Virus record (IMG/VR): IMGVR_UViG_3300031576_000001
Span: 62,001-126,000 of that record
DNA length: 64,000 bases
Reading direction: 5' to 3' (one strand)
The notes under the pieces were generated by a model, which saw only the letters and a list, made by a program, of their open reading frames with translations, ran no database searches and was not told the origin of the DNA. Shown here piece by piece: positions 18,553-48,430 of this stretch (positions within the stretch are counted from its first letter, which is position 1; every line of letters begins with the position of its first letter). The position numbers were made by a program, and so were the translations under genes.

Positions 18553-18569
18553 GAAGAGGCACTCTGACC

Positions 18570-21601: not shown

Positions 21602-21708
21602 GTCTATTTGTCCAGCCTGATGGTTTTGTAACGTGTAGTAGTCTAGCCCTGACAAGGTTACGAAACCTGTTGACAGAGCATCTTGGGCAGTTTACTACAC
21701 ACTCCAAG

Positions 21709-24387
21709 ATGAACACCGAGCACAGTTACGGGCTAACGCGCGAGCGTTTGGTAGACCTTTACGTTACCCAAGGTCTAACGGACGTTGAGATTGGGGAGTC
21801 CCTGGGGGTAAGGTACTCTGCGATCTCCCGGTTGAGGGAGAGGTGGGGGATACGCAACCTGTTGGCGTCGGAGAGGTTGGGGTTGCCTGAGACCCTCACG
21901 GAGAACCAGCAACAGCTTTTGCTGGGCACCATGCTAGGTGATGGTAGGTTGACGGGTTCTGGGTCGGAAACAGCCCTACTTACCGAGTACCATTGCCTCA
22001 AGCAGTCAGACTACCTCATGTGGAAGGTTGCCCAGTGGGGGAGCTTCATCAACAGGGTTTCTGACCGTACCAACGGGGAGTACCGTGGAAAAGTGTACTG
22101 CACTCATGCTAGCAGGGTTTTTCGCCCCTACTGGGAGATGTTTTACCCAGAGGGTAAGGGGCACAAGACCCTGAAACTGCTGGACCCTAAGAGGGTTGGA
22201 CCGTTGGCGTTGGCGGTGTGGTACCTGGATGACGGTAGCAAGAGCAACACGGGTACATTTCGTTTTTCCCTGGGTCCGCCCGACCCGGAGAGTTTCGAGG
22301 TTGCCTTGGGTATTTTCCGCAACCTTGGGATGCACCCCGCACGGTACGGGGAGGCTGGGGACAGCACAATCATTGTGCAGACTCGTAAGGACATCACTCT
22401 CTTTGCAGAGCTAGTGTCCCCACACATTCCAGATTGTATGAGCTACAAGATGGAGTTGAAAGCCAAGCGTGGCGGACCCCCCCCTAGAGACTTGTTGACC
22501 CCGCAAGCCTTGCAGCCTTTGATTGATCGAGACTTGTCAGCCATGGAAATGGCTGAGATTTTCTCAGTTTCTAGGAATAGCGTGGGGCGAGCCTTGGACC
22601 GGATGGGGGTGCCACACCAGCCTACCGGGCGACCCGCGGGTAAGCGTGGTTTTGACTTGGGGGTATCCGAGGCACGCATTCTCAAGATGGACCCTCTCGC
22701 CCCAGACTATCGTGAGAGAGTGTTGGGTGTGCTTTCGATGACGGAGTTCCCTGGTAAAGAGCCCACTACGCTTGAGGCTCGCAAGGACATTGCCTCCTTG
22801 AAAACTTCCCCTGTGCGTGTTCAAGACGGTAAAATTGTGGGAGCGTCCAAGCTGGGTCAGCGGGCGTGCTTGCACTTCTTCGGTTACCGTTTGGATGGCA
22901 CGTACCGTGATAACCTGTCGGCGCGTAGGGGGTGGTACGATACCGAGACTCTTGTGAGGGCGGTGAACTTTCAGATAACCCACCACGACCCCGTGACCCC
23001 TAAGAGGGTCTGGCGGGCGGTGCAAGCCATTCTTCGAGCGCCTTGCAACTTCCGCCCCACAATTGCTAAAGCTCTGGTGGACGCTTTCTGCCCTCCCGGT
23101 GGGGTGGTGTTGGACCCTTGTGCTGGTTACGGGGGTCGAGCCCTGGGCACTCTGGTCACGGGGCGCACCTACGTAGGCGTGGACCCGCACCCCAAAGCAA
23201 AAGAAGCCTACCACGGCTTGTTTGCCTTGTTGGGTGGTAATGCCACGTTTCACCACGCGCCTTATGAGGAGGTAGCCCTGGGGGACTTGCAGGCTGACTT
23301 GGCGTTGACCTCACCCCCATACTTCTCGGTTGAACGGTACTCTGACGCCACTACTCAAAGCTGGGTACGGTACAAGACGTGGATGCTGTGGGTCAACGGT
23401 TTTCTGCGTCCCTTGCTGACCAAAACGTACCAGCACTTGAAGCCGGGCGCTCTTTTCTTGTTGAACGTCAAGGACATTCGCAAGGGTAAGGACACCTACC
23501 CCTTGGTTAGCGAGTCCCGGCGTCTTGCCGAAGAGGCTGGGTTTGTATCTGAGCCAGACCTGTCTTTGCCTCTTGGTAGGCTCGGTCCAAAGGAGAAGAG
23601 TAGTGAGCCTATTCTTGTGCTCAGGAAGCCTGGACCTGGCACCCCTCGACCTGTTGAACGCTCACAGCCTGTGGTCGCTACCCAGATGGCGCCAACGGTT
23701 GCAGAGCCTCCACGCCCGCGCAGGTACGTACACCCTGAGAATGCTGCAAGTAGGGAGGTCGTTTGCAAGGGGTGTGGGGTTACATTCACCGCGCACCGCA
23801 GTGACCGAGAGTTTCACAGCGAAGCCTGTTACGTCAAGTACCGCAGGCGTCAGGCTAGAGAGGAGGTGCCCAACAAGACCTATCGTACCTTCACCTGTGA
23901 GAAGTGTGGGGTCTCTTGGGACACGGAAGCCCTGGGACGCTTTACCCTCTGCGAGGGGTGCAGAGCCACACACACCAGAGAGAGTACAGAGGGTAAGCGT
24001 GAAAAGACGTGCCACTACCGCCACTGCCAGAAGACCTACACGGATACCTCTCGGTTGAACGGCACCAAGTTTTGCTGCGCGGAGCACCAGCGCCGTGAGA
24101 AGCTGTTCAAGTCGGGTCAAGTAACCTCGGAAGACCAGTTCAGAGACCCCAGCAAACCTACGTACCGCACCTGTAAACTGTGTAAGACCCAAGGCACCGA
24201 AGAGGAGATCCTTGGCGGTGTGTGCCTCCTCTGCCGTGCCAAGCTGCGCGAGAAGACGTGCAAGAAATGCAACGCGACCTACACAGACGCCTCTGAGCGA
24301 AACACGAGGCGGTACTGCTTTGCTTGTCGCCCCGACGACACCCTACCCGTGACCCCGCCTCTGGGTATACTGCACGACCTGGACTAG
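21709..24387 (+). CDS. Fusion: LAGLIDADG-like endonuclease + SAM-dependent DNA amino-methyltransferase + CxxC Zn-finger repeats (892 aa)
   Basis: LLGTMLGDG and LAVWYLDDG motifs; VLDPCAGYGG (motif I) and LTSPPYF (motif IV); many CxxC/CRPD units at the C-terminus. Start set at ATG 21709 because an in-frame TTA lies upstream at 21658. Confidence 0.8.
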   Translation: MNTEHSYGLTRERLVDLYVTQGLTDVEIGESLGVRYSAISRLRERWGIRNLLASERLGLPETLTENQQQLLLGTMLGDGRLTGSGSETALLTEYHCLKQSDYLMWKVAQWGSFINRVSDRTNGEYRGKVYCTHASRVFRPYWEMFYPEGKGHKTLKLLDPKRVGPLALAVWYLDDGSKSNTGTFRFSLGPPDPESFEVALGIFRNLGMHPARYGEAGDSTIIVQTRKDITLFAELVSPHIPDCMSYKMELKAKRGGPPPRDLLTPQALQPLIDRDLSAMEMAEIFSVSRNSVGRALDRMGVPHQPTGRPAGKRGFDLGVSEARILKMDPLAPDYRERVLGVLSMTEFPGKEPTTLEARKDIASLKTSPVRVQDGKIVGASKLGQRACLHFFGYRLDGTYRDNLSARRGWYDTETLVRAVNFQITHHDPVTPKRVWRAVQAILRAPCNFRPTIAKALVDAFCPPGGVVLDPCAGYGGRALGTLVTGRTYVGVDPHPKAKEAYHGLFALLGGNATFHHAPYEEVALGDLQADLALTSPPYFSVERYSDATTQSWVRYKTWMLWVNGFLRPLLTKTYQHLKPGALFLLNVKDIRKGKDTYPLVSESRRLAEEAGFVSEPDLSLPLGRLGPKEKSSEPILVLRKPGPGTPRPVERSQPVVATQMAPTVAEPPRPRRYVHPENAASREVVCKGCGVTFTAHRSDREFHSEACYVKYRRRQAREEVPNKTYRTFTCEKCGVSWDTEALGRFTLCEGCRATHTRESTEGKREKTCHYRHCQKTYTDTSRLNGTKFCCAEHQRREKLFKSGQVTSEDQFRDPSKPTYRTCKLCKTQGTEEEILGGVCLLCRAKLREKTCKKCNATYTDASERNTRRYCFACRPDDTLPVTPPLGILHDLD

Positions 24388-32899: not shown

Positions 32900-33103
32900 T
32901 AAGGGCGTCTCGCGCCAGAGAATGAGAGCCGCCTTGGTGATGAGGAAAGCCTCCTCGGGGCTGACGCCCTTTGCTGCCAGGTACGCCGGCAAGTCCTGCG
33001 GGTCCACGCCGTAGTCCAGAGCCATCCTGGCGCGGCGCATGAGCCTCTCGGTGTCCCCATTGTCTTCGTGAGCGAGGGGGCACGGGGAAATTTTGAGGTA
33101 CAT
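32900..33103 (-). CDS. Small hypothetical protein (TTA stop)
   Basis: MYLKISP...RETP-TTA; ending at TTA removes the overlap with the convergent gene. Confidence 0.5.
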
Positions 33104-33107
33104 CGGG

Positions 33108-33311
33108 TCAAACCTCTTCGAGGAGATCCGCACGGAGGGGGTAGGCCACGCACTCGGGACTCAGCGTGACCGAAAACTCGGCGCGCTTGGGTGTGGTGGG
33201 GTGGTGGTAGACTTCAAGCACCGTGACCACAGAGCCCACAGGGAGGCAACACACCCCCGTGACTTTGAGGGTGGCGCCGCGCTTGACTAGGAGAGACTGA
33301 GAGGGAGTCAT
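33108..33311 (-). CDS. Small hypothetical protein (67 aa)
   Basis: ATG directly downstream of a bipartite motif copy. Confidence 0.5.
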   Translation of the reverse strand: MTPSQSLLVKRGATLKVTGVCCLPVGSVVTVLEVYHHPTTPKRAEFSVTLSPECVAYPLRADLLEEV

Positions 33312-33316
33312 AACCC

Positions 33317-33347
33317 CTCTTACGTACAACCCTCCCCGGGATTCACG
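33317..33347 (-). promoter_or_regulatory. Bipartite motif CGTGAATC-N15-CGTAAGAG (copy 1)
   Basis: Exact 8+8 match, 15-nt spacer, 5 nt upstream of ATG. Confidence 0.75.
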
Positions 33348-33379
33348 ACATTTCAGAGGATGCCCCTCCCCGTCACCTG

Positions 33380-34009
33380 TAACCAAGGGGGCTCCTGGGG
33401 CTCTTGGTTTTTCTTGCTTCGCCGGGCGGGCTTCTCCGTCACGACCCAGGCAGCACAACCGAGGGGGCTCCGCTGTTGCAAATCCTGGTAGACACGCTCG
33501 CCGGCTTGCTCAGCCTCGCTCCCCTTGCCGTAATCGTACAGAGCGTCCATCTGACGCACCGAGAGGTGGTTGGGGTAGCGCCTCTCCTCGTCCTTCTGGT
33601 TAAGCCACTCTTCGATCTGCGCCTTGATGCTCTTCTTGAAGTCGCCCCGGGGGTTGGTACGCATACAGCCCCAGCACAGGGCGTACAACTCCTCGAAAGG
33701 CAGCGTGAAGAGGGAGCGCTGCCAGTGCTCGCTCCAAGAGGGCATGACGCCAGCCGACCACGCGAAGTGCCAGGACGAGGCATTCTCAACCCACTCCTCC
33801 ACGGAGAGCCACGCGGGCAGCGTGACGGGCAGAACCTCGTAAACCTTCTTCTCGACGAGACGGTCAGCACAGGGGATCGTGACCGTCTCGTCGAGGTTGA
33901 CTTCGCCCTCGACGTAGACCCCCATGGGGCTGCGGGGGGTAGAGGCGTTCTCCCCGTGGGCACGGAAGATGACTTGGTGGGTAGCGAAGAGGTTTTCGGA
34001 TGTGGACAT
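33380..34009 (-). CDS. Hypothetical protein (209 aa, TTA stop)
   Basis: GC3-rich ORF; ends EPPW-TTA. Confidence 0.65.
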
Positions 34010-34015
34010 ACCAAT

Positions 34016-34046
34016 CTCTTACGCACAACCTCGCCCACGATTCACG
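34016..34046 (-). promoter_or_regulatory. Bipartite motif (copy 2)
   Basis: CGTGAATC-N15-CGTAAGAG, 6 nt upstream of ATG 34009. Confidence 0.75.
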
Positions 34047-34054
34047 AAAATCTG

Positions 34055-34366
34055 TTAGGGCTTCTCCAGCCTGGCTTTGGTGTCCAGGTTCTTAGCTACC
34101 CGTTGTAGGACAAGGTAGCCAAGCAAGTCAAGCTCAGCATCTTCGTTGTCCGGGCTCCCTGACTCCGTGGCATGTTTGATGCGTGAGAGCTTGTCGTCCA
34201 TCCTGACCTTGATTTGATCGGTGGGTGAGGCGGACGAGAACACGCGAAGAGGGTCAATGGCTGCGTTACCGTACCGTTGGTTCTTCTCGGTCAGCAGCTT
34301 AGCTACCTCTTCGCAGACAACCCGGATCTCGGCTTGAACTTCGCTTAGTGTGGGCATGGCGTACAC
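34055..34366 (-). CDS. Nucleotide-modification-associated domain 1 (DUF1599-like) protein
   Basis: EKNQRYGNAA...VRMDDKLSRIK...DLLGYLVL signature. Confidence 0.65.
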   Translation of the reverse strand: MYAMPTLSEVQAEIRVVCEEVAKLLTEKNQRYGNAAIDPLRVFSSASPTDQIKVRMDDKLSRIKHATESGSPDNEDAELDLLGYLVLQRVAKNLDTKARLEKP

Positions 34367-34370
34367 CTTT

Positions 34371-34709
34371 TCAGGGGTTTAGAGGGCAACCGAGGGTCGT
34401 GGCAGTCTTGGCAACCTCTTCGGGTGTGGGGGTACCAGCCCTCCAAAGCCAAAGGGTCGTGTTGACGTGCCAGTCCCTTACCCCAACGATACTCACGGGG
34501 TCACCCCCGCTGACCTTACAGTAGTTCACCTTGTCGGGCGTGGTGAGGTGTTTGTAGGAGCACCACGACCCAAAGGCTAGCAGGGTAAGGGCTACCGCCA
34601 GACTCCAGAAAGCCCAGGCGTCACCATCGTACAGGACAACCGAGGTTGTGTGGGGCAAACCGTCGTGCTCACAGTGGGGGCATTTGGCTGTGGTTTTCTG
34701 TACTTGCAT
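34371..34709 (-). CDS. Small membrane-anchored protein (C...LGC family)
   Basis: Hydrophobic AWAFWSLAVALTLLAFG segment, then YC...ATTLGC; start uncertain. Confidence 0.5.
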   Translation of the reverse strand: MQVQKTTAKCPHCEHDGLPHTTSVVLYDGDAWAFWSLAVALTLLAFGSWCSYKHLTTPDKVNYCKVSGGDPVSIVGVRDWHVNTTLWLWRAGTPTPEEVAKTATTLGCPLNP

Positions 34710-34902
34710 GGTACGAGAGTACACCGAAAGCCACCGCGTAAGCAGCCTCTTCCCAGAGAGCGTCATAGCCCCTCGCCACGCACAGTGCCTTCTCGGTCCC
34801 CTTTGCGTCAACCGCTACGACCATGAGCCCTCTTCGGAAAAGAGCGTAGCCCAGCGTCAGGGCAGTCTTTATTGCAGCCTCTTTGGCTTGCTGAGAGGTC
34901 AT
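34669..34902 (-). CDS. Hypothetical protein (77 aa)
   Basis: ORF tiling only. Confidence 0.4.
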   Translation of the reverse strand: MTSQQAKEAAIKTALTLGYALFRRGLMVVAVDAKGTEKALCVARGYDALWEEAAYAVAFGVLSYHASTENHSQMPPL

Positions 34903-34939
34903 ACAAGGGCTCAGCCTTCCAAGGTTATCAGGCTAAAGA

Positions 34940-36175
34940 TAACCAGGAACCGTCCCGTATACCCTCGGGTTTCGTAGCCACGGGCGCGCTCGCCCCGGGG
35001 GACAGCCTTTGGTTGTCCGTGATCAGGTGCCACCCCTTTTGAAAGCCTAGCTCGGTCAGGGTTTGCAGGTTGGCTAGCAGCACGGAGCCCTCCAACGCCT
35101 TGCTGTTCTCTTGGTAGTGCTCGAACCAGCGGACCCCGTACTTGCCATACACAGAGGCAGGCGTGGGGGTGTAGGGTGGCTTCTCGCCCGTGACAATCTG
35201 ATAGCCCAAAGAGTTACACAGGTGGACGTAGACCCTCTCCGAGTTTTCCGTGTCCCACACGTCCAAACCAAACTCGTCCTCTTCGATAGCCTGGGTCATC
35301 TGACCCCCAGCCGCCATCCCCATGTCCACGTTGAGCGACGCCAGCATGAAAGCACTGGTCTCTTCTGTGCCCCGCTCCATGTCGCAGTTGAGCCTGGTGT
35401 CCAGGGTGTAGTCACTGAGAGCTATCGCCCCCTTGGTCACGTTCTCCCCCCAGGCGCACCCAATGGGTACCGTGCTCGACTCGAAAGCGCTGTAGTTCAC
35501 GGTCATGCCCCCGCTACTCTCTGAAATGGTTGTGATGCCACCCTCGAAGGACTGACCCGTACCCCCCCCCTTGCGACTCCTGGTAAAGCCCCGGAAAGTC
35601 TGAGCCATGACAGGGAAGCGAGCCTCGTAGACTTCGCGCTTCATGGGGAAGACTTCGATCTGAAGACCCCCGAAGCTCTCTTTGCCCGAGAGTTGAGACT
35701 CCACCGTCCAGCCTTGACCCAAAGGCGCCGCTACGAACTGGCGGATCTTCCCCTTCTCTACGCAGAAGCCGTCAATCCAGGGCTGCTTGGGGGCGACCAT
35801 GTAGTCCTTCTCACGCAGCCCCGCGGACCACTCTTCCCCGGTCACGGCTGACCTCATACCCGCCGCCACCTTGATCGCAAAGGGGTAGTGCGCCCTGCGG
35901 TCACCCGCGTACCCTGCCTTGAAAGCGATGTAGAGCGCCTCCGCTTGGTACATGGGTAGGAAGATACCCCCGTGTTTGTTCCACTCGGGGGGTACGCGGT
36001 CCTTGTAGCGGTCAACCTCCCTGAGAGGGAAGGCGCCCAGCCCGGGAGGTAGCCGGTGGGTCTCGTCGTTGTCGGGGAGCCTCAGCGTGCGTTGAAAATC
36101 CAGGGTGAGGTTTGCGTTTGCGTGCCCGACCTTACCGGAGAGGTCAAAAACAAGGGTTTCATTGTGTATCCTCAT
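34940..36175 (-). CDS. Conserved hypothetical protein (TTA stop)
   Basis: FQRTLRLPD...LPPGLGAFPL...LPMYQAEA family recalled from bacteria and fungi; ends RDGSW-TTA. Confidence 0.7.
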
Positions 36176-36229
36176 CTTGGGGGCTACCCTACCATGGAAC
36201 CCACCCCTTGTCTAGCCTGTCAACCCTCC

Positions 36230-36433
36230 TCACCACGACGTTACACCAGAGTCCCCCGGGCTTAGAGTGTGCTCGATCCTAGCCCGGAGGGCATAGGCAC
36301 GGTCAGCCTCTTGGTGTCGCTCTGGAGTCAAATTTGGGGCACCCAGGTTGATCCGGTTCAGGATGAACGCTGAGAGGGACTGAACGAGAAGTTGACCCTC
36401 ATCGGGCGAGAGGGTGATGGTGATGCTTAGCAT
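36230..36433 (-). CDS. Hypothetical protein (67 aa)
   Basis: AGGAAGG upstream; tiles with neighbours. Confidence 0.45.
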   Translation of the reverse strand: MLSITITLSPDEGQLLVQSLSAFILNRINLGAPNLTPERHQEADRAYALRARIEHTLSPGDSGVTSW

Positions 36434-36447
36434 GGTGCTCTACCTTC

Positions 36448-36768
36448 CTAGGCGGGCCTTCCGCCCTTGAACTTGAGTTTCAGGTCGTTGTGCTGCAACA
36501 CAACCTTGTCGTGGTCGCTGTAGCCTAGCTGAACCCACTCCAAGAGTTGAAGCTGTACACCCTTGCCAGAGGTGCTCACCTTGCGTGTAGGTCCACGTAG
36601 GCTGTTGATGACCAACAGCGCACACCAACCCTCTTTGCCAGGCTGCCGCAGGTACCGGTGTGCTGCTCGGCGGGCGCTAGTCTTGCTACGCCAGTTACCC
36701 AGGACAGCGCTACCGACCCAAGTGTCAGCCCGGCAGCCTATCACGGCGTACCAGTAAACGTGTTGCAT
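36448..36768 (-). CDS. Hypothetical basic protein (106 aa)
   Basis: GGAG upstream; tiles with neighbours. Confidence 0.45.
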   Translation of the reverse strand: MQHVYWYAVIGCRADTWVGSAVLGNWRSKTSARRAAHRYLRQPGKEGWCALLVINSLRGPTRKVSTSGKGVQLQLLEWVQLGYSDHDKVVLQHNDLKLKFKGGRPA

Positions 36769-36794
36769 GAGGCTCCGTTACACCGTGGCAAAAA

Positions 36795-37172
36795 TTACCG
36801 TCCCTTGGTGCCAGGGATACTGATCTCGTGGAGGCAGCGTGCAGCGGTACTCACCGCAAGGTAAAACTGCGACACGGCAAAGGCGCGCTCACCAGGGATG
36901 GTAGTCGGGCTGAGATCGATCACGGTTTGGACCCCCCCGTGTGAGGGCAACAGGTTGATCGTAGCCGTAGCCCAGTCAGGGATACCGGCGGCGGGCGAGT
37001 AGCCAAAGGTAAGGGAGGTCTTCTCACCCCTCTTTAGCCGGGCTTCGCAGAGAACAGCCAACTCCTCTGCGAAAGGAGCCCCCTCAAGGTACAGGTTGTA
37101 CCCCAAGTCAAGGAGGTCAAGGGCTTGCGTGGCGATCTGGTTCGCCAACTTGTTGAGTCGAGGTTTTTTCAT
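36795..37172 (-). CDS. Hypothetical protein (125 aa)
   Basis: AGGAGG SD and ATG just after an in-frame TTA; second half of track ORF 36795..37388. Confidence 0.65.
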   Translation of the reverse strand: MKKPRLNKLANQIATQALDLLDLGYNLYLEGAPFAEELAVLCEARLKRGEKTSLTFGYSPAAGIPDWATATINLLPSHGGVQTVIDLSPTTIPGERAFAVSQFYLAVSTAARCLHEISIPGTKGR

Positions 37173-37190
37173 GTGGCCCCTCCTTCTACG

Positions 37191-37388
37191 TAACGAGTAG
37201 ACAGTGACCGGCTGGTCGTACCCCACGGTCACGTCGTAGCGCTTTGTGCCGTCGTGCAGGGTGAGGTACACTTTGCCCTGGCTCTTGTAGACCTCCAAGA
37301 CTTCGCCCTTGGCGACGCCCTCGGGGAGGTACATCTTTACGATCTCAGCCTTGTAGACGTGGGCGGCACAGGTTTCGGTGGTGTTCAT
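37191..37388 (-). CDS. Small hypothetical protein (65 aa, TTA stop)
   Basis: First half of the same track ORF; ends TVYS-TTA; downstream of motif copy 3. Confidence 0.6.
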
Positions 37389-37393
37389 AACCC

Positions 37394-37424
37394 CTCTTAC
37401 GCTAGTCCACGCTCAAGATTCACG
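37394..37424 (-). promoter_or_regulatory. Bipartite motif (copy 3)
   Basis: CGTGAATC-N15-CGTAAGAG, 5 nt upstream of ATG 37388. Confidence 0.75.
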
Positions 37425-37677
37425 CCTTATTGAGGGCACCGCAGAGAACCTCTTTGCGACACTTGGGGCACACCCTGTAAGGACTGTACGCCGGGTGTGC
37501 CTCAACGGGGTCAGAGGTGGTTGGCTGTGTGCAGAGCCCGCAAACCTCTGGCAAGGGGGGCAGATGTCCCTCTACTTGTAGCGCCAGATGTAGGATCTCG
37601 TCCGCCACCGTCCTGAGAATCTGAGCGAACCTACGCATGACGCGGGCACTACACCCTTTGCTCCCCTCTCTTAGCAA
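37420..37677 (-). CDS. Small Zn-finger-like protein
   Basis: CGLC and CPKC pairs; start may be ATG 37638. Confidence 0.45.
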   Translation of the reverse strand: MLREGSKGCSARVMRRFAQILRTVADEILHLALQVEGHLPPLPEVCGLCTQPTTSDPVEAHPAYSPYRVCPKCRKEVLCGALNKA

Positions 37678-37682
37678 GAACC

Positions 37683-38189
37683 ATGTCAGGGGTACTTTTT
37701 TACCGCGGTCAGCAGCTAGGGCGTAACGACCTCAACCTCTTCTTGACCAACGCCAGCGACCACCCCACGCAAGCCGCTGAGATTTGGTACGCCCTCTATG
37801 ATTTCACCACGGGCTTTGAGTGCCTCGTAGGAGACGAGCGCCGTACTCCCCTCATGCCCAGCCTGGGTGAGTACTACGCCTCGGTCGTGATCCCTACGGA
37901 CGCCAGGATCGGGGGCTACAGGGTACGGTGGTTCTTCCGAGAGACCGTGGGCTCACCGCTGCAATCCGTGGTCCAAGAGTTTCAGGTTATCGACAAAAAC
38001 CAGTTCAGTCCGTCCGTATTCAGTGACACCATGACGGATTTGATACGTCGTCTGCGTATTCTGGTCCGAGATAACTGCTTGGATGGGGCAGAAACTATTG
38101 AAATTGTGATTGACCAGGACCAGAAAGAGATTACACTGGAGGATCTCTGGGACGCACTTCATGACCTCTCCCCCCTCCCCCCATCCTGA
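37683..38189 (+). CDS. N-terminal half of a fractured neck/head-tail gene fused to a 37-aa N-intein
   Basis: Ig-like domain, then LRILVRDN|CLDGAETIEI...ITLEDLWDAL (intein block A) from 38076; TGA stop. Confidence 0.75.
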   Translation: MSGVLFYRGQQLGRNDLNLFLTNASDHPTQAAEIWYALYDFTTGFECLVGDERRTPLMPSLGEYYASVVIPTDARIGGYRVRWFFRETVGSPLQSVVQEFQVIDKNQFSPSVFSDTMTDLIRRLRILVRDNCLDGAETIEIVIDQDQKEITLEDLWDALHDLSPLPPS

Positions 38190-39075
38190 ACTGGTACCCT
38201 ACTTGGAAAAGCACCAAATTACTTGGGAAGTGTTCTCGAACACACGTCTTAAACCACGTAGCGTGGTAGCTAAGAGACGCGCGATTGTCACTGAGATACA
38301 CGAAACTGGAGCAACCTGGGCGCACATGGTGGCGATTACGTGTTTGAGTCAAGGGTCGATTCAACGCTTGAGTCAAGCTAAAGGTAACCCTCTAGTGAAG
38401 CAACGAAAGCAACAAATTGCAGCAGAGCTTGGACGCCAAGGGAAAGGTGCTAAAAAGCCGTGGTTGACCTTGAAGCTCCAAGCTGATTGGGAATCTGGAA
38501 AGTTCGACTTCCACAAAGGGCGTATTCGTCCACAGTTTGAAGTAGACAAGATTCAAGCGTCTTGGGCGGACCCTGCACGACATGATAACCAAGCTCAAAT
38601 GATGAAGTCTTGCTGGCAAGACCCTAACTTTCGAGACAACCTTCTATCTTTTCACCGATCTGACACAGAACGGGTAAAACGCTCCCAGGCTCAGGCCCAG
38701 CGTATGCTCGATCATCCTGCAACTTACATGGGGGGCCGTGGCGAGTATGTTTCAACACAAAAAGCTACAGTATCTAAAACCTGGGTGCGTAGTTCTTTTG
38801 AGAAGCGGTACGTTGAAATACTAGAACGCGACCCAACTGTTCTTTCTTACGAGTATGAGCCTCTTTATGTTTTGCCGGATGGTAGGCACATCCTTCCTGA
38901 CTTTCTAGTGCGCTATCGGGACGGAAAGCAAGAGCTTGTTGAGGTTAAGGCTAAGTGGGTACTTGCTATGCCTGTCACATATAAAGCACAAGTGCGCCTA
39001 GCACTAGCGCGAGAGCTTGCAAATAGAGAAGCACTTGCCTTTAAAATCGTTACGGAGAATGACCTGTGGCCTTGA
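38161..39075 (+). mobile_element. Free-standing PD-(D/E)xK (TnsA-N-like) endonuclease gene between the split-intein halves
   Basis: SSFEKRY...YEYEP...LPDFLVRY...ELVEVKAKW; AT-richer than the flanks. Confidence 0.75.
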
Positions 39076-39941
39076 CTACTATTGAACGTAACCAAATACG
39101 TGCAGCATACCGGACAGGGCGACTAACCACCTGGGCTGTAAATAAAGAAGGGCAACGAGAGCTTCAACCTATCCAGGCTGTACACCAACACAACTTGCAG
39201 TCTGATGACTTGTACGCCGTTACCACAACACGGGGCACATCGTATATGACTGGGGGTCACCGGGTATTTCGCACCCCCACATTGAAGGTAGAAGCGTGCT
39301 CTTTGACGCAAAACTTCACTGTCCTTGGCGAAACCATCGTGACCTCAAGACTTGTCGGTAAAGCCAGAACGGTCTATGACTTGACTGTAGGTGTGTGGCA
39401 CAACTTCAGGTTGTGCCGTAGTGGGTTGGTGGTGTCAAACTCACCGGACCAAAACTACCGCTTCGTCCCCCCCTCTAGGGAGGCTACTATCTCTCAGTTC
39501 AATCGTGTCTTTGGTTTTCTGTGGGAGGATTACGAGATGGACGAGTATATTCAGCGCTCGCTCGACCTGATCATCGCGTCCCCACCTCGTACACCTTTTG
39601 CCAGCGTCGAGCAAATGATAGTGCAGAAGAGGGAATGGACAACACTGTTGCTTACAGGTGCGGCAACATTTGCAATAAGGGCAATGATGCTAAACTGGAT
39701 TGCGAATGAATTTGATTTTTCCGTGGGGGGTATCTCTCTAAACATAGAGAAGTCGTCTAAGTACGAGAGTGCGAAAGGTAACTTTGAAGAGGAGTTTACC
39801 CGCCAGCTAGAACAAAGTAAAAAAACGGTACTGATTATCAGAGGGCTACAGCAGCCCCGTTTCGGAATCGGCGTGAGATCCTCCTTCGGGAGTTTTGTGG
39901 GTAGAAATGTGGTAACCCCTCGTAAATTCATAGGTTTCTTA
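39066..39941 (+). CDS. 125-aa C-intein fused to the C-terminal half of the fractured gene (TTA stop)
   Basis: TGGH (block B), VYDLTV..WHNF (block F), VVSN|S junction at 39440/39441; ends PRKFIGF-TTA. Confidence 0.78.
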
Positions 39942-39994
39942 GCTCTGGTATTGGGGCTATTGCACTTACACTACAGTGGTGCTACCGTACTGGT

Positions 39995-41362
39995 GTGTCA
40001 ATAAAAGGCTCCTGTTTGTGCCCTTGCTGTGGAAAAGACATGGCACCCCATGCAATACATGGTCACACCGCGGTCTGTGAGGCTTGGAAAGCGTCTCGTG
40101 GGAAACCCTGGCCCCAGTTCAAATACAGTTACAGTCGTGCGAAGTACCTACCTGGCTTGGTGGAGGGTGTAGACTTTCTTCGATGCCACGTTTGCCTAAC
40201 CAATGGTTGGGACTTCAGGTTCAATCGTCTAGTGCAGCACTTGGCAATCCACGGGTTGTCTGAGTCGGAGTACTTGAGCCTATTCCCAAGTAAGCTCGTG
40301 CGTTTGGCACTGACCAACGAGCGTCGCAAGGCTTCTGTTCGTGCGAAGTACGGAGTAGACTTCATCGCGCAAGTCGAGGAATGTAAAGAGAAGTCGAGGA
40401 ACACCATGGTAGAACATTATGGTGTTCCCTCAGCTATGCAGTCCGAAGATGTCCGAGCGAAAGCCACTAAAACCAACCTTGAGCGGTATGGTTCGGAAAA
40501 CCCGTTTGGTTCCAAAGAGGTTCAGAAGAAAATACGAAAGACCCTTTTGTCTAAGTATGGGGTTGCGAATCCCCAACAAGTGTCTGACATACGAACCAGA
40601 ACGCTACAGACTAACAAGGAACGGTACGGGTCGGAGCACTTCTTCCAAACGCCTGATTTTGACACGGTACGAGCGGCAACGTGCCAAGAGCGTTATGGTG
40701 CTCCTCACCATATGCAATCGGTTGAGGGTCGGGCCAACCATGAAGCGGCATTCATTGCAAAGTACGGGGTACCTAACCCATTTCTTATCCCTGAGATACG
40801 GGACCGTGCTTATGCCACTAATGTAGCTAACCATGGGGGCGTACACGCCCTTGCACACCCGGACGTGATTGCAGCACGGAAAAGAAACCTCTTGGCACTC
40901 TACGGCGTGGATAACATATCTAAGGTGCCTGCAATCAAGGACAAAATCATAGCAAAAGTGCGTGCCAGCTTCTCTGGTGCCCCTAAGAGAACTACACCCG
41001 AGCGGATAGTTGAGGGGTTCTCACCTGAATGTGTGGTTTATTCAGGTGATTGGTCCTACTGGGTTACATGGGCTAACGGCTACCATAAGAACCCAGACTT
41101 TGTGATTCTCACCCCGCAACAGTTGGAGGAGTACAAGGCTGGCGCAGTCCTGAATGCCCTCCGTACTAGTAAGGTTATTGAGGTCAATGGGGACTTTTGG
41201 CACACTAAGTACAGAGGTGTGACACGAGAGGAGCGGGAACAACAATTCTTTGAGGGTTACGCTTCCATAGGGGTAACCTGTCTCATTCTTTGGGAGTTGG
41301 ATCTTTACGCTTCAACGTCAGACGCTATACGTGCCAAAGTTGAGGCATTCTGTTGTTCCTAA
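39995..41362 (+). mobile_element. Putative homing endonuclease (Zn fingers, KYG-type repeats, Vsr/PD-(D/E)xK-like C-terminus)
   Basis: CPCC and CHVC, repeated (K/R)YGV units, KNPDF...VIEVNGDFWH; flanked by a duplicated host 3' end. Confidence 0.75.
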
Positions 41363-41382
41363 GTAAGAGATCCCAAATCGGG

Positions 41383-41406
41383 CCTCGCAAATTTATAGGT
41401 TTCTTA
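41383..41406 (+). repeat. Orphan duplicate of the last 8 codons (PRKFIGF-TTA) of gene 39066..39941
   Basis: CCTCGCAAATTTATAGGTTTCTTA versus CCTCGTAAATTCATAGGTTTCTTA (39918-39941); the two differences are synonymous. Confidence 0.85.
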
Positions 41407-41423
41407 TCTGGTAAGCTGTCAGC

Positions 41424-41591
41424 TAAGCCTGGTCTGTCAGTGCTAGCCGTCACGGGGCATACCCCGCCTCTACGCAAAGCGTGCTTGGTCTCTCTGCGTA
41501 GCCACCTGTGGGCTTGTCTCTTCAAGAAGCCCTTGGTCTTGCTACCACACCCCCGGCACATTTTGCAGCTACAGCTAACGTAAGCTCTCAC
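41424..41591 (-). CDS. Small Cys/Arg-rich protein (55 aa, TTA stop)
   Basis: VRAYVSCSCKMCRGC...KRQAHRWLRR; bounded by in-frame TTAs at 41610 and 41424. Confidence 0.45.
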
Positions 41592-41704
41592 GTCCCAAGC
41601 CCCTGTGGATAACTTGAAGCCGTGTGCGCGACGTAGTGCTTGGTACTCAGGTCCATCTTTCAGGGAGCATCCTGTCTGGTCATACGCTCCGGTAACAGAA
41701 GAGT

Positions 41705-41962
41705 TCACGGCTCTTTTGCTTTCACGGACACACACCCTTTTACAGTGGAGGCGTACATCGCCCGTACCACGTCTTCCGACCTGGGCACGTTGAAGGTCAT
41801 CACCGGCTTACCTGCTAGGTCAAACTGCACATGACCTACAGGACCACGCCTGTAGGTCATTGTACACACCCCCTCACTTGTAGCCCTCTTGGTGTGCCCT
41901 GAGAGCGATGACAGCGTAGCCCAGAGGGTTACATGGTAGAGGAGGGTACGGGGTGTCATCAC
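41705..41962 (-). CDS. Small exported/membrane protein (C...GC family)
   Basis: GVCTMTY...TVKGC. Confidence 0.45.
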   Translation of the reverse strand: MMTPRTLLYHVTLWATLSSLSGHTKRATSEGVCTMTYRRGPVGHVQFDLAGKPVMTFNVPRSEDVVRAMYASTVKGCVSVKAKEP

Positions 41963-41994
41963 CAGCTACCCTTAGCCTCTGGGAACAGAAGGGG

Positions 41995-42303
41995 TTACAA
42001 TGCACCTCCCACGAGAACCTCTTTGCAGCCGAGCCGCGTCTTGGCAATCTCGACCACACTGCTAAGCCCTTGGGGGTTCTGCACAGCAAACTCGGCAATC
42101 GTCTGGTCAAGGTAAACGTAGCGGTGGGCGTAGACTGTGAGCCCTCCCCCAGTGTAGACGAGGGTACACACGCCCGTAGAACGTGAGAGGTAGTGTGACA
42201 GACGAACCAGACCGATAAGTGTGCCCACGACGAGGCTGAGGCATACCAGGATGGCGAATAGGTCACGGGCGACGGTAGAGGGGGTGTCTTTCATGCTTGT
42301 CAC
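41995..42303 (-). CDS. Small membrane-anchored protein (C...LGC family)
   Basis: Hydrophobic LFAILVCLSLVVGTLIGLV; GVCTLVY...KTRLGC. Confidence 0.55.
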   Translation of the reverse strand: MTSMKDTPSTVARDLFAILVCLSLVVGTLIGLVRLSHYLSRSTGVCTLVYTGGGLTVYAHRYVYLDQTIAEFAVQNPQGLSSVVEIAKTRLGCKEVLVGGAL

Positions 42304-42324
42304 AGTACACCCCTGTGCTCTTCG

Positions 42325-42579
42325 TCAGCCTACCTGGCACCCTTGCGCTAGCTCTTCGTAGCTCTTGACGGTTGAGGGTACCCATTTGAAGGCTACCAGC
42401 GTGCTCCCCATGATGATGCACTCCGTGTAGGTTTGCCCTGGTACCATGTGCTTCTTGACCCAACCGTTCGCCCCCGACGTGAGGTAGATCCCGGTGCCAA
42501 GCACGCCAGCGAAGCCATCAGCCTTCCAAGCCTCTTCGGTTTGATCGTCGATACCATTTGTAGGTGCTGGGTTGTCCAT
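42325..42579 (-). CDS. Hypothetical protein (84 aa)
   Basis: ORF tiling only. Confidence 0.5.
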   Translation of the reverse strand: MDNPAPTNGIDDQTEEAWKADGFAGVLGTGIYLTSGANGWVKKHMVPGQTYTECIIMGSTLVAFKWVPSTVKSYEELAQGCQVG

Positions 42580-42591
42580 AGTGTATCCCGC

Positions 42592-42906
42592 TCAGAGGGG
42601 GAGCACCGTGCCAGCCGAGAGGGTCACGCAACCCAGCGCCTTAGCGCCCGCTACCACGGACTGTATGTCCCCCAGCGTGCTTGTCTGCGCTGTCAATGGG
42701 TGTATGTAAATAGGCGTCGTCCCGTCCCCCCTGGATGTCGTGACCACGTAGTACGAGCCTGTTGTCCGTAGGACTAGCTCAAGGGTGCATGTGGGTGTAG
42801 CAGGTACCGTTCTCTCAGAAGCCGTGGAGAGTAGTATCGCCAGGTTGGCCGTGCCCAGAGATATGCCAACCCCGAGCCAGACGAACCAGAGGATGAGGCG
42901 TGTCAT
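42592..42906 (-). CDS. Small membrane-anchored protein (C...LGC family)
   Basis: Hydrophobic N-terminus; TCTLEL...AKALGC. Confidence 0.55.
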   Translation of the reverse strand: MTRLILWFVWLGVGISLGTANLAILLSTASERTVPATPTCTLELVLRTTGSYYVVTTSRGDGTTPIYIHPLTAQTSTLGDIQSVVAGAKALGCVTLSAGTVLPL

Positions 42907-42910
42907 GCGC

Positions 42911-43237
42911 TAACCCCCGTGCCCGCTTCTCAACCGAGCGTCGCTTCTTCCTGCGACGCTCCATCTGGGTCATCTCCACGTCCTCCAGGCGAGCAAAGAG
43001 GGCGTCGTCCACCTTGACCTCCTTGAACCTGTCGGTCTGGTCACCCTTACAGCCGTGCAGAAATACAGCACCACGGTAAAGCGGGTTGAGAAAGAGGTAA
43101 AGGGTGGTATCGGGTTCGTTGTCGGTCCACGCTGCCCAGCGTGATAGCGTCCCTTCGGAGGCGAGGTCTACTTCCATGGCGAGGTCCGGGTGGAGGTTGC
43201 CTGTTAGCACAGCGTCTACTATACCCCGGGACAGCAT
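42911..43237 (-). CDS. Hypothetical protein (TTA stop)
   Basis: Ends KRARG-TTA, 4 nt before the ATG of the next gene; start at 43237 or 43177. Confidence 0.5.
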
Positions 43238-43550
43238 GACAGACGACAGCGCACCAAAGGCCCTGCTAACCCCCCTCGACCCGGAAAGCCTCATGGCGCT
43301 ACAGAGGCACCAAGAGATCCGAGCCAAGATCGCCCACGATATGCTTGAGCTTGAGCAAGAGAAGGTCCGTTTGCTTGTCCTAGCCCAGGGCTTCGATAAG
43401 GAGGCACACTCCCTCTTCGCCAAGCTGCTTACCGAGAGGGGGCAGAACGCCGACGCCAAGGTCTACGTAGACTTCAAGGACGGTCTACTCAAGCCTGTAG
43501 GCGAGCCAAACGTCCACTCCTTAGCTAAGCCCCCCTATCCCCCCCTCTAA
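43236..43550 (+). CDS. Small coiled-coil hypothetical protein
   Basis: MTDDSAPK...; restarts the + strand structural run. Confidence 0.55.
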   Translation: MTDDSAPKALLTPLDPESLMALQRHQEIRAKIAHDMLELEQEKVRLLVLAQGFDKEAHSLFAKLLTERGQNADAKVYVDFKDGLLKPVGEPNVHSLAKPPYPPL

Positions 43551-43553
43551 GGC

Positions 43554-44891
43554 GTGGTTTACGCCAGGGACAGAAACCCACCCCCCACCCTAGAGTACCG
43601 AGCTACCCCGTGGCCGCTCCCTCCCCTTGAGGTATTTATGACTGGTGGGGTACCAGGGGTGTATGACCTACACTGGACACCCCCAGCGATACTCACCGGC
43701 AACGGGGGCTTCTGCCTTGTGGGGGTCAACGTCTACCGTAGCTTTGACTCGGAGTATGGCCCGTACCATCGGATAACGGAGCTACCTGTGGGCTCCCTGT
43801 ACTGGCAGGACCGGACGGGTAACGAGCTGGTTATCGAAGAGGACGTGACCGACCGGGTGACCCTCAAGGGTGACGCCGGTTCTTTCCCTCAGAACCCACG
43901 GTGGGCTTTCCAGGTCAGGTACCCTCCCATTGTCCGAGAGGGTAGCCAGGCTACGCCTACCCGCATACCACAGGACGTGAGAGCCTTCGTGGACGGGGTA
44001 GAGACTGCCGTGCTAGCCGTCTGGGGTGACACGGGGGAGGTCGAGATTGACACCCACCTGTACCCTAACGTGACGTACCAGACCCTCGACAAGCCACTAC
44101 TGCCCTCTCCGGGGTCTCGGGTGACCGTGACCTACCGCAGGAACCGTTCTCTCTTGCGGACGGACTTGAACACAAGGGTCTTTTACCGTGTCACCTCGGT
44201 AGCCTACCCGGCTTCTTGCTCCGCGCCTCACCAAGAGGACTTGCTAGAGACCCCTTTGGACCGTGCCCCGATGGCTTCTACACAGGAGACGGAAAAGCTG
44301 GACTGGGTATGGCGCGACGCGATTGAGCGCAACCGGTGGATTCTAGAGCAAGGCGGGGAGCGCGTGAGGGTCTTTATCAAGAAGACCGTGGGCGTGCCGT
44401 GTTTCTGCTTCCAAGAGCCCAGACACAAGCAGCCTCTAGCTGACTGCCGGGACTGTTACGGGTCAGGAATCCTTGGGGGTTACGAGGGACCGTGGGATAT
44501 ACTCATTGCCCCTGACGACGCTGAGCGACGGAAACGACAGAGTGAGAGGGGCAGGACCATTGAGCACAGTTACGAGACCTGGACAGGGCCGTCACCTCAA
44601 CTGGACCAGCGAGATTTCCTGGTCAAGTTGAACGGCAGGCGATACTCGATAGGTGCCGTGCGTACCCCCACAGCAAGGGGGATGGTCTTGCAACAGCACT
44701 TCACAATGAGTCAGCTCGACGAGAAGGACATACGCTACAGCGTCCCTCTAGGTAACCCCGTCAAGCACGTAGCTACGACGTTCACGCCGCTTTTCGCGCC
44801 ACCACCCCCAGACATTACCAACCACCCCACCGTGCCCGAAGAGATTGAGCTAAAAGGGCGCACCCGGGCGTGGGTTAACACCTCGTACTTA
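43554..44891 (+). CDS. Putative neck/head-closure protein (TTA stop)
   Basis: FnIII-like start, CFC...CRDCYGSG Zn motif, DQRDFLV...YSIGAV OB-like segment; ends WVNTSY-TTA. Confidence 0.55.
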
Positions 44892-46563: not shown

Positions 46564-47439
46564 ATGCCCAGGCGAGAAATACCAAAATGTGTGTTGGAAG
46601 CAGCACTAGAGTCAAACCCTATGATTACTCTTGTGGGCTTGGCAATTGTCTGTCAGTGCTCTGCGACATCTGTAGCTAGGAACTTGGCGAGACATAGCCT
46701 GCGAACGAAACGCTGGTCCGAGAGGCGACACAGCGACGAAACTAAGCAAAAGATGCGAGATAGTGTACCAGACAGATCGGGTGCTCGTAATCCCAACTTT
46801 GGGGTGAAGGACCGTCCTTGGCTAGAAGGGGATAAGAACGCTTTGCGACAATGGCACAAGGCTAACCCTGATTTCGGAGAGAGGCAAAAGGGAGAAAATA
46901 ACCCTGTACACAAGGTAAAGCATCTCTACAATGATGCCAGCTATGTGCTCCGCATAACGTCTGGGATACGTGCTCATGCTAAAGCTAAAGCCGGGCACAC
47001 TTACGAGGAAACCTACGGTGGGGCGAAAGCAGAAGAATATAAGGAACAACTGCGCCGTGCGTCCCCTGCTAGAATGGCAAAGTTCAAGCGAAAAGTCACG
47101 GCACCTGAAGCAGCCGTAGCGGTTATGCTCCAAAGTCTTGGGGTGTGCTATGTGGAGCAAGCGCCTTTGGGTTACTACACTGTTGACTTCTTGGTTCCTA
47201 ACGTGAAGCTGGTTATCCAAGCTGATGGGGACTTCTGGCACGGACACCCCGATAAGTATACCGTAGAATCGCTTACTCCCACACAAAAGAAACAGAAGCG
47301 TCTGGACTCCTCAACCAACTCTTACCTCGTCTCGCGAGATTATCGCGTGCTACGCCTTTGGGAGAGTGACATCAAAGATAAAGCTGCGGAGTGCCTGGCA
47401 CGTATCAAACAATACCTGGAGGTCACAAATGGAGAATAA
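46564..47439 (+). mobile_element. Putative homing endonuclease (HTH/NUMOD3-like + DUF559/Vsr-like domain)
   Basis: HSDETKQKM; EQAPLGYYTVDFLV...IQADGDFWHG...VLRLWESD. Confidence 0.78.
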
Positions 47440-48430
47440 CTACAAGCTAGGCTGCGCAATTGATATAGGAACAATGAATTTGGTTTCTGCTAGGCAAAAC
47501 CAGCAAGGAAAGGTGGTTACCAAGAGCATCCGTGACTGCTTTCTCGACCTTGAGCCAGACGCCAAGAAGACCCTCAAGCTCTCCCGCGTACCGTACACGG
47601 AACAAGCCGGGCAACTGGTCGTCCTGGGGGAGGCGGCATTCCGGTTTGCCTCTCTGTTCAAGAGGGAGGTACGGCGCCCCTTGCAGCGTGGGGTGATTGC
47701 AGCCGGCGAGCTAGACGCTCAGAAAATCCTGTCCCTGCTCATCTTTCACGCACTGGACGTGCCGCTCACCGCCGGAGAGGCTTGCCACTACAGCGTGCCC
47801 GCGGCGCCTGTGGACGACACCACACAGGACGTGTTTTACCACCAAGAGGTCTTCCGCAAGATCCTGACTGACCATGGGTACAAACCTACGCCCGTCAACG
47901 AAGCCATGGCTATCCTGTTCTCGCAGTGTGCCCAAGAGAACTTCTCCGGGGTGACGATGAGCTACGGGTCTGGTCAGGTGAATGTGGCTCTTGGTTACCA
48001 GACTATCGAAGGGCTAACCTTTAGCCACACTCATGCCGGTGACTGGGTTGACATTCACGCCGGTAAGGCTGTGGGGCTCACCGCTCAGAGAATGTGTGTC
48101 ATCAAAGAGAAGGGTGTGGACCTCCTCGCCCCGAAAACCAGGGAGGAGGAGGCTTTGGCGCTCTACATGCGAAGCGCCATGGACTACACCCTTTTTCACT
48201 TGAAGCGTGAGTTTGATAAGGTACGGGCCACGCTGGACATCGCTGAGCCCTTGCCGATCATCCTCTCAGGGGGGATGACAAGAGCGGGTAACTTTCTACC
48301 CATCTTCCAAGAGGCTATCAAGGGCGTCGCGCTACCCTTTGAGGTCAGCGAGGTCAGACTAGCCACGGACCCCATGACTTCGGTAGCTGAGGGCTTGCTG
48401 GTTCTGGCTCAACAAGAGGCTGACGGCTGA
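47429..48430 (+). CDS. Actin/FtsA/ParM-superfamily ATPase
   Basis: GGAGG SD; AIDIGT (phosphate 1), MSYGSGQVN (phosphate 2), IILSGGMT (adenosine), VAEG (connect 2). Confidence 0.75.
   Translation: MENNYKLGCAIDIGTMNLVSARQNQQGKVVTKSIRDCFLDLEPDAKKTLKLSRVPYTEQAGQLVVLGEAAFRFASLFKREVRRPLQRGVIAAGELDAQKILSLLIFHALDVPLTAGEACHYSVPAAPVDDTTQDVFYHQEVFRKILTDHGYKPTPVNEAMAILFSQCAQENFSGVTMSYGSGQVNVALGYQTIEGLTFSHTHAGDWVDIHAGKAVGLTAQRMCVIKEKGVDLLAPKTREEEALALYMRSAMDYTLFHLKREFDKVRATLDIAEPLPIILSGGMTRAGNFLPIFQEAIKGVALPFEVSEVRLATDPMTSVAEGLLVLAQQEADG

Follow-up and report, generated by a model that had tools for sequence, protein, structure and literature searches.

Fractured genes, in which a split intein is accompanied by an intervening free-standing homing endonuclease gene, are known from the survey of Dassa et al. 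(2009, PMC2677866), and at 15 of the 26 published loci the 3' end of the endonuclease gene overlaps the downstream intein gene by 6-69 bp (PMC2677866). A second group of described systems consists of the few natural split inteins with a short N-terminal part (IntN), namely AceL TerL, GOS TerL, VidaL and PolB16 (PMC13014065, PMC10189870); their IntN spans 15-37 residues (PMC13014065), and a short IntN is prized because it can be obtained by peptide synthesis (PMC13014065, PMC10189870). The site S1 follows strand beta2 and the site S2 follows helix alpha1; S2 has so far been seen only in AceL TerL and GOS TerL, VidaL and PolB16 being split at S1 (PMC13014065). The IntN of AceL TerL has 25 residues and that of GOS TerL has 37 (PMC13014065, PMC10189870). 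The stretch of DNA that we analyze here (the window, 64,000 nucleotides) comprises bases 62001-126000 of a 322,633-bp virus record (IMGVR_UViG_3300031576_000001; completeness estimated by CheckV at 68%) from a single cave metagenome sample. It holds a gene for a virion head-to-tail adaptor that is fractured, as Dassa et al. (2009) use the term, and has an S2-type split; both the host and the nuclease family are new. Our overall reading, which we regard as highly probable, is that a mini-intein in this adaptor gene has been cut in two by the gene of a TnsA-fold nuclease, that the two intein parts splice in trans, and that the nuclease gene spreads by homing. A first-pass annotation of this DNA had pointed out that fractured genes with split inteins and endonucleases, and short-IntN inteins in terL, are established, and the literature bears it out (PMC2677866, PMC13014065).

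The locus consists of three tightly packed genes on the + strand: an N-gene, a nuclease gene and a C-gene. The N-gene (37683-38189, 168 residues, with its ATG at 37683 and its stop codon at 38187-38189) opens with an N-extein of 131 residues (37683-38075), which contains an Ig-like beta-sandwich and the first helix of the adaptor domain and ends in ...RILVRDN. The extein end reads ...LIRRLRILVRDN and then C-L-D-G-A-E-T..., with a stop 37 residues on; RDN lies at 38067-38075, and the codon of Cys1 at 38076 directly follows the N-extein. The 37-residue IntN (38076-38186, or 38076-38189 with the stop codon) carries Cys1, block A, a helix (..TLEDLWDAL..) and a short tail. Its conserved core is only about 30 residues long, and the last seven or so residues (..LSPLPPS) are a tail arising from the overlap with the start of the nuclease gene. 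That gene (38161-39075, 304 residues from its ATG) has a frame open from a TTG at 38110; the ATG at 38161 is the start in the database gene call and most likely the true one. Its overlap with the N-gene amounts to 29 nt from the ATG and to 80 nt from the TTG, and at its 3' end it shares 10 nt (39066-39075) with the C-gene. The C-gene (39066-40004, 312 residues) therefore has its GTG start inside the nuclease gene, with a GGAG 10 nt upstream. The first 125 residues are the C-terminal intein part (IntC, 39066-39440), composed of an N-terminal helix and blocks B (TGGH, 39249-39260), F (VYDLTV at 39372-39389 and WHNF at 39396-39407) and G (VVSN, 39429-39440). The next residue is the Ser+1 of SPDQNY at 39441, where the 166-residue C-extein begins (39441-39938); this helical adaptor domain with a beta-hairpin, recognized by its homology to intein-free alleles, runs to ...PRKFIGF and is followed by 21 foreign codons and a stop (39939-40004) that overlap the start of a second nuclease gene at 39995. 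This anatomy is solid, and the coordinates, residues, part lengths, blocks and overlaps given in the first-pass annotation are all correct. An independently built Logan contig from the same cave sample is identical to the window over 37600-41500, and the identity of this second, independent contig rules out an assembler artefact. Among the assembler contigs of the source sample we find no nuclease-free or intein-free variants and no joints.

The layout resembles the fractured genes of Dassa et al. in several respects. Two same-strand genes, each composed of an extein and an intein part, surround a free-standing nuclease gene, an arrangement that we see at more than 15 loci; the 3' end of the nuclease gene overlaps the downstream start, in the window by the 10 nt given above; the setting is phage and metagenomic; and the proposed origin is the invasion of a mini-intein. 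The differences lie in the actors. The nucleases of the published loci are GIY-YIG, Vsr-like and HNH enzymes (PMC2677866), whereas the one here has a TnsA fold, and the published hosts are enzymes of DNA metabolism and terminase, whereas the host here is a virion adaptor.

The two intein parts belong to a single intein. From seven contiguous inserts found at the same site in homologues we built a profile of 158 columns, which matches solved inteins, best of all the Pyrococcus PolII intein (PDB accession code: 5bkh, E 7e-10); further matches include Mja KlbA, Pho RadA, TFIIB, PI-PfuI, NrdJ-1 and DnaE, and more than 15 intein structures are matched besides 5bkh. The IntN of the window matches columns 1-31 of this profile (hhalign, E 1e-8) and residues 7-125 of the IntC match columns 32-158 (hhalign, E 4e-25). 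The halves tile the profile without gap or overlap, and therefore nothing of the intein is missing. The earlier proposal that the two parts are halves of a split intein is thereby strengthened; they behave as a class-1 intein with an atypical, N-proximal split site. The break, between columns 31 and 32, comes after the segment ..TLEDLWDAL... Its counterpart in the PolII intein is ..TLKELYELF.., and from the alignment and the general knowledge of the fold we take the segment to be helix alpha1. By this alignment the window intein is an atypically split intein of the S2 type. In the contiguous alleles the segment after helix alpha1 varies in length and is missing altogether in two, which fits a loop tolerant of insertion.

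With its 37/125 division after helix alpha1, the window intein differs from canonical split inteins, whose IntN has about 100-130 residues and whose IntC has about 35-50 (PMC13014065). Across the 34 homologous N-genes the IntN measures 29-37 residues, the window's being the longest. The closest likeness is to AceL and GOS TerL, which share the natural split after the first helix, the short IntN and the origin in metagenomic phages; the Cys1 of the window intein further recalls AceL, which is described as cysteine-dependent. Unlike these two, our intein sits in an adaptor and not in a large terminase and combines Cys1 and Ser+1 with a penultimate Ser. Its allele series and its fracturing nuclease are visible, its splicing is predicted, and no sequence relationship to the TerL inteins was detectable, no direct comparison with a TerL intein sequence being made. 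VidaL and the PolB16 intein OarG (IntN of 16 and 15 residues) are also natural short-IntN inteins of biotechnological interest, but they are split at S1 instead of S2, and VidaL (PDB accession code: 6vgv) matched a contiguous allele only at E 0.88. Four relatives (P0028-30 and P0040) seem to start at block F, which would give a canonical split with an IntC of 23 residues. These are gene-call artefacts, because at locus L003 the frame is open through the full IntC with a Met upstream.

The homologues show the same site with and without the intein. The C-gene as a query yields 615 homologues in a word-based search and, in an exhaustive search, 166 representatives at 50% identity, all 166 of which belong to the adaptor host gene. 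They fall into three groups: proteins of about 295-306 residues, in which the exteins are joined as ...RDN/NPD(R)NYHF... (the slash marks the junction); proteins of about 450 residues with a contiguous insert of about 155 residues exactly at the RDN junction; and proteins of about 290-315 residues that start with the C-part of the insert. The intein-free alleles with a contiguous RDNxPDxNY that the first-pass annotation had suggested looking for are those of the first group. When the window exteins are joined in silico, the resulting 318 residues align without a gap to the intein-free P0019 (75% identity; 63% to P0067), and no indel is present at the junction relative to intein-free alleles, so that the insertion is in frame at a conserved site. 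Compared separately with intein-free alleles, the N-extein has 55-67% identity to their N-terminal part and the C-extein 53-64% identity.

The catalytic residues of the intein are conserved throughout the family, as would fit activity. Cys1 is present in 34 of 34 natural N-genes, and of 66 sequences 64 keep TxxH and 65 keep block F; T62, H65 and N125 are invariant in an alignment of 32 split alleles, and D105 and H112, the block-F Asp and His (positions F:4 and F:13), are nearly so (at least 90%). The window intein has all of C1, T62, H65, D105, H112, N125 and S+1, and its penultimate residue is Ser, not His. Of 83 intein-bearing sequences, 63 have a penultimate Ser, nine a penultimate His and 11 another residue there, while at +1 Ser occurs 66 times and Cys 17 times; in the intein-free alleles, a set selected by the junction motif, the +1 residue is Asn in 85 out of 85. 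The penultimate Ser is thus the norm of this family, contiguous alleles included, and not the less usual feature that the first-pass annotation had seen in it. Phage inteins often have no penultimate His, and the block-F His can stand in for it (PMC5050341); active inteins of this kind are documented (PMC5050341, and, to go by their titles, references 74 and 87 cited in PMC4031507). A 30-residue query of PDB sequences for a non-His penultimate residue in DnaE split inteins gave nothing useful.

The host protein is assigned from the intein-free P0067, for which an AlphaFold model was built with an alignment of 58 sequences (predicted local distance difference test, pLDDT, 82). The model has an Ig-like sandwich (strands, residues 1-101), a helix at residues 115-127 and a helical domain with a beta-hairpin. 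Residues 115-273 match the head-to-tail adaptors of Pa223, KHP30, A4, GP4, SU10, VP1, Carin 1, PhiM1 and DEV at Z scores of 8-10.9, and the T4 gp13/14 neck is also among the fold matches in this range. The adaptor matches come from the exhaustive aligner only, a Foldseek search of the model against the PDB giving nothing at E<=0.001. The C-extein weakly matches phrog_17327 ('head-tail connector', E 1.4e-4), and an intein-free homologue, gp319 of Tunturiibacter phage Tunturi_5, is annotated as a head-tail connector. The intein stands immediately after the first helix of the adaptor domain. The structural host proposed by the first-pass annotation is confirmed by the adaptor fold; that such a host is less usual holds only in part, since the portal proteins of mycobacteriophages are an earlier case of virion proteins with inteins (PMC5050341). 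Those inteins (Kelley et al. 2016, PMC5050341) are like ours in having a host from the neck/portal region of the virion and in tolerating a non-His penultimate residue, and they differ in being contiguous, many with an endonuclease domain of their own, and in host protein and phage group. Our literature search found no report of an intein in an adaptor or in huge phages. Most relatives carry, just upstream, a paralogue of the adaptor Ig-like domain at 25-33% identity (L003 2010-2306, L012 2177-2515, L048 3160-3501); no such match turned up in the searched window stretch 33001-44000, where the upstream genes run on the opposite strand.

We turn to the nuclease between the halves. It matches Pfam PF08722 (Tn7_TnsA-like_N) with 33.7 bits against a cut-off of 26.5 (E 5e-8), and its AlphaFold model (pLDDT 82) superimposes on TnsA (PDB accession code: 1t0f_A) with a Z score of 13.2 and a root-mean-square deviation of 1.9 A over 109 residues at 24% identity, the next match having a Z score of 7.9. 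The TnsA-like PD-(D/E)xK nuclease overlapping both halves, as named in the first-pass annotation, is therefore the right identification. The catalytic domain covers residues 192-304 with E214 (38800), D247 (38899), E261 (38941) and K263 (38947), and the motifs ...VRSS(F/Y)E..., ...LPDF... and ...(V/I)EVK... are invariant in 15 homologues taken from the loci and nine from the database. The N-terminal 190 residues are helical and weakly resemble DnaA domain IV, a helix-turn-helix DNA-binding domain (Z 6.6). A phmmer search against PDB sequences gave no match, so that the fold search was required. A Vsr-like (EDxHD) homing endonuclease is excluded by poorer fits, I-Bth0305I (3r3p_B) and Vsr (1cw0) having Z scores of 6.1 and 6.8 against 13.2 for TnsA. 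A TnsA subunit of a Tn7-type transposase was also considered and rejected, as the model ends with the catalytic domain and the neighbours are intein halves, not Tn7 partners. The nuclease shares with Tn7 TnsA the catalytic fold and the E / PD / ExK motif; it differs in its own N-terminal, DNA-binding-like helical region, in having no TnsB/C/D neighbours and in lying inside an intein, not at a transposon end. The match of phrog_218 ('head closure / connector') to the nuclease domain (38734-39072, E 1e-9) carries a label that looks misleading and may have been transferred from neighbouring structural genes.

All nuclease homologues with visible context sit between the same intein halves, including the two most distant of the nine database homologues. 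In GenBank phages the family occurs only in LR745208.1, and the word-based search, of limited sensitivity and yielding nine proteins, shows none in other host genes. Because it lies between intein halves and has neither the TnsA C-terminal domain nor Tn7 partners, the nuclease is predicted to work like a free-standing homing endonuclease.

The mechanism that we propose would start from an adaptor gene with a mini-intein that separates Asn131 from the +1 residue. The free-standing gene of a homing endonuclease with the TnsA fold would have inserted itself into the loop that follows the first intein helix and split the intein, so that two polypeptides would be made, an N-extein-IntN of 168 residues and an IntC-C-extein of 312 residues, the GTG start of the C-gene being probably coupled in translation to the end of the nuclease gene. 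The 37-residue IntN, of which about 30 residues are conserved, would dock on the IntC and complete the HINT fold. Trans-splicing of class 1 would then proceed by an N-S acyl shift at Cys1, the attack of Ser+1, the cyclization of Asn125 aided by the block-F His in place of a penultimate His, and finally an O-N shift, giving a 318-residue adaptor with the junction RDN-SPDQNY. The nuclease, for its part, would promote its own spread: in a co-infection it would cut alleles that have no nuclease gene, either intein-free or with a contiguous intein, and repair would copy the nuclease gene along with the intein and extein sequence on its flanks.

The base composition of the window has the pattern expected from homing with co-conversion of the flanks. 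The G+C content at third codon positions (GC3) drops from 0.71 in the N-extein, a value typical of resident genes, to 0.57 in the IntN and 0.40 in the nuclease gene, stands at 0.54 in both the IntC and the C-extein and at 0.53 in the second nuclease gene, and is back to about 0.7 downstream, at 43197. By this measure the block 38076-41362, C-extein included, looks imported.

An allele series can be followed across the relatives. We surveyed 80 IMG/VR loci and other contigs, a set biased to intein-bearing alleles as the query included the IntC; intein-free alleles are the majority among the surveyed loci. Among the homologous sequences there are, at the intein site, 85 intein-free ones (RDN/N), eight contiguous mini-inteins (P0017, P0024 and others) and 57 split C-genes. 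Of the surveyed loci, L016, L042 and L047 have contiguous mini-inteins. A split with a full nuclease gene is found in the window and in L001, L004, L006, L007, L009-L012, L019, L029, L044, L055/56, L062 and L088-L090. The nuclease gene is shortened or broken in L013 and L018, reduced to a remnant of 96 residues in L003 and L005, and left as a trace of 27 residues in L015; L008 differs from L009 solely in the clean loss of its nuclease gene (a 771-bp deletion), with the split kept. In L014 (3180-3995) an open reading frame (ORF) with an HNH motif takes the place of the TnsA-like gene between the same halves, so the gap can be re-occupied by a different nuclease gene. The layout of N-gene, TnsA-like gene, C-gene and DUF7487 gene recurs identically in the huge phage LR745208.1, and almost all relatives lie on contigs of 100-620 kb and are therefore huge phages. 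A maximum-likelihood tree was computed from 65 sequences of the region equivalent to the IntC. In it the eight contiguous inteins are dispersed among the split ones, 57 in number, and the branches with good support require at least three changes between the contiguous and the split state, which, the sequences being short and the tree unrooted, we read only as more than one invasion or loss.

The same series bears on the question of whether the nuclease is still active. It could be a stranded, inactive relic, the arrangement being inherited vertically as an ordinary two-gene operon, and the decay or loss of the nuclease gene in L003/L005, L008 and L015 while the split stays, together with the lack of a paralogous nuclease copy elsewhere in the 322-kb record, would agree with that. 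However, the window nuclease is of full length with E214, D247, E261 and K263 invariant, its 40-45% identity to homologues is the pattern of purifying selection, its GC3 is far from that of the genome and suggests a recent arrival, and the scatter of contiguous alleles in the intein tree argues for repeated invasion or loss. We consider the relic unlikely, though it is the most serious of the alternatives. That the split outlives the nuclease argues, on the other hand, that the two-piece gene is functional.

Would the halves indeed splice? A predicted complex of IntC (residues 1-135) with the N-gene product (residues 120-168) scores 0.76, against 0.02 for the best of three controls, a mark attained by 51 of 78 solved complexes and by two of 108 mismatched pairs; the model supports an association of the halves, with the reservation that the score may partly reflect its memory of solved split inteins. 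This reservation is one of several points that weigh against our reading. The window intein has no penultimate His; it has Leu33 where at least 90% of the split alleles in the 32-allele alignment have Trp; and its branch in the tree of the family is long (1.75, the median being 0.67). Of these, Leu33 and the long branch are mild cautions on splicing. The 21-residue non-native tail of the C-extein might impair the adaptor, and in a scan of 37300-43700 for promoters and terminators the sites are no commoner than in shuffled sequence. The reading is drawn from DNA contigs, and the target of the nuclease would be either an intein-free or a contiguous-intein allele.

Some of these points would suit a different account, in which the intein halves no longer splice and either act as a non-covalent clamp for the adaptor fragments or mark a dead fractured gene. 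A case of fragments assembled without splicing is indeed known in the Aeh1 NrdA split by mobE (PMC3045599), and the long branch, the penultimate Ser, the one departure from a nearly invariant residue and the C-terminus altered by the second nuclease gene all lean the same way. Nevertheless, the window retains every nucleophile and assisting residue, as do the 57 split alleles, at 30-50% identity, and those contiguous alleles that share the penultimate Ser have to splice if a working adaptor is to result. Both frames are open, with exteins 53-67% identical to intact alleles, and the adaptor gene is present in a single copy in the locus, within a conserved structural neighbourhood. The loss of splicing is accordingly quite improbable, and trans-splicing the better account.

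As the window comes from a single metagenome sample, one might suspect that an error of sequencing or assembly has made a contiguous intein with an in-frame endonuclease domain look split. The chance is negligible, as the nuclease lies in another frame and overlaps both neighbours, the second assembly agrees, other samples show the three-gene layout with differing overlaps in over 15 independent contigs, and no family member has an in-frame nuclease.

The relatives hold a second intein site within the C-extein, which reads ...(D/E)EF/S...HN/SY(S/N)IGG.... The intein at this site is contiguous in P0020, P0049 and P0128; elsewhere it is split in the equivalent position, behind the first helix, and then has Ser1, Ser+1 and an IntN about 28-35 residues long. 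The N-terminal part is present in P0132, P0144 and P0279, which are paired with the C-terminal parts in P0192, P0201 and P0202, and also in P0150. P0279, the closest relative of the window by its N-extein (83% identity), is intein-free at the first site and split at the second. At locus L088 (2633-7794) the adaptor gene is broken into three parts, with a TnsA-like gene and a DUF559-like gene standing between them and a DUF7487 gene coming next; L089 is also listed among the relatives with a second-site intein. The sole natural cysteine-less atypically split intein known is that of PolB16 (PMC13014065), and from their residues the second-site inteins are candidates for natural cysteine-independent split inteins with a short IntN.

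The second nuclease gene of the window, at the 3' end of the adaptor gene (39995-41362, 455 residues), is homing-endonuclease-like, with DUF7487 repeats (E 1e-33) and a PHROG 'homing endonuclease' match; its C-terminus (..EVNGDFWH..LWELD) is weakly like that of the Vsr/DUF559-type gene at 46564 (pairwise E 4e-4). Homologues of the C-extein end at ..PRKF(V/I)GF, and the C-gene runs on for its 21 foreign codons because the second nuclease gene has replaced the native stop after ..PRKFIGF. A direct repeat of 27 nt that encodes PRKFIGFL (24 of 27 identical) flanks this gene at 39918-39944 and 41383-41409, and members of the family trail the adaptor gene in many relatives, with or without an intein (L012, L026, L032-34, L060, L076). 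The ORF at 41383-41580 was considered as a homologue of the C-terminal extension of P0019, the nearest relative, and rejected, as only the repeated RKF(I/V)GFL motif aligns.

What could the family teach us? It offers no fewer than 57 different C-halves of split inteins and 34 N-halves, with matched contiguous and intein-free alleles, and so makes a comparative set for learning the requirements of the S2 split. The origin of the split is visible, as the nuclease is in place and can be compared with pre-invasion and post-loss alleles, and the gene-breaking model of Dassa et al. is tested with a nuclease family not previously linked to inteins. As predicted here, a stoichiometric part of the virion, and not just replication enzymes, can depend on trans-splicing, and relatives may need two splicing reactions for one adaptor protein. 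Putting these together we arrive at a wider and more tentative proposal, to which we give somewhat less than an even chance: the TnsA-fold nucleases would be an unrecognized family of homing endonucleases specialized for the alpha1 loop of mini-inteins, their repeated invasion would have made a large family of S2 splits in the adaptors of huge phages, and some relatives would join three polypeptides by two trans-splicings (Cys1/Ser+1 at the first site, Ser1/Ser+1 at the second). If this is true, dozens of candidate short-IntN inteins become available, cysteine-independent ones included.

Several other features of the window remain to be mentioned. No tRNA and no Rfam family is present in the region (gathering threshold or E<=1), and on the same empty Rfam search we rejected the idea that an RNA, such as a group I or group II intron, lies around one or other of the nuclease genes. 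Downstream of the second nuclease gene, about 1.8 kb (41363-43196) with a resident-like GC of 0.58 lacks a convincing ORF on both strands, matches neither Pfam nor Rfam and is without a counterpart in the 80 related loci; only the last 350 nt or so before a small conserved gene at 43550 are common to relatives. Signals of inteins and homing-endonuclease domains are also seen further away. A 978-residue ORF (15631-18567) has Hint_2 and Intein_splicing matches over residues 198-679 or so, a 943-residue ORF (21556-24387) has a LAGLIDADG_2 domain preceding an N6/N4 DNA methylase domain, and a UvrD-type helicase of 1602 residues (57964-62772) carries an intein with a LAGLIDADG_3 domain at about residues 367-734. 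A free-standing nuclease gene at 46564-47439, with Vsr, DUF559 and NUMOD3 matches and matches to PHROG endonuclease families, overlaps with its 3' end the start of a Volactin-family gene (47366-48430).

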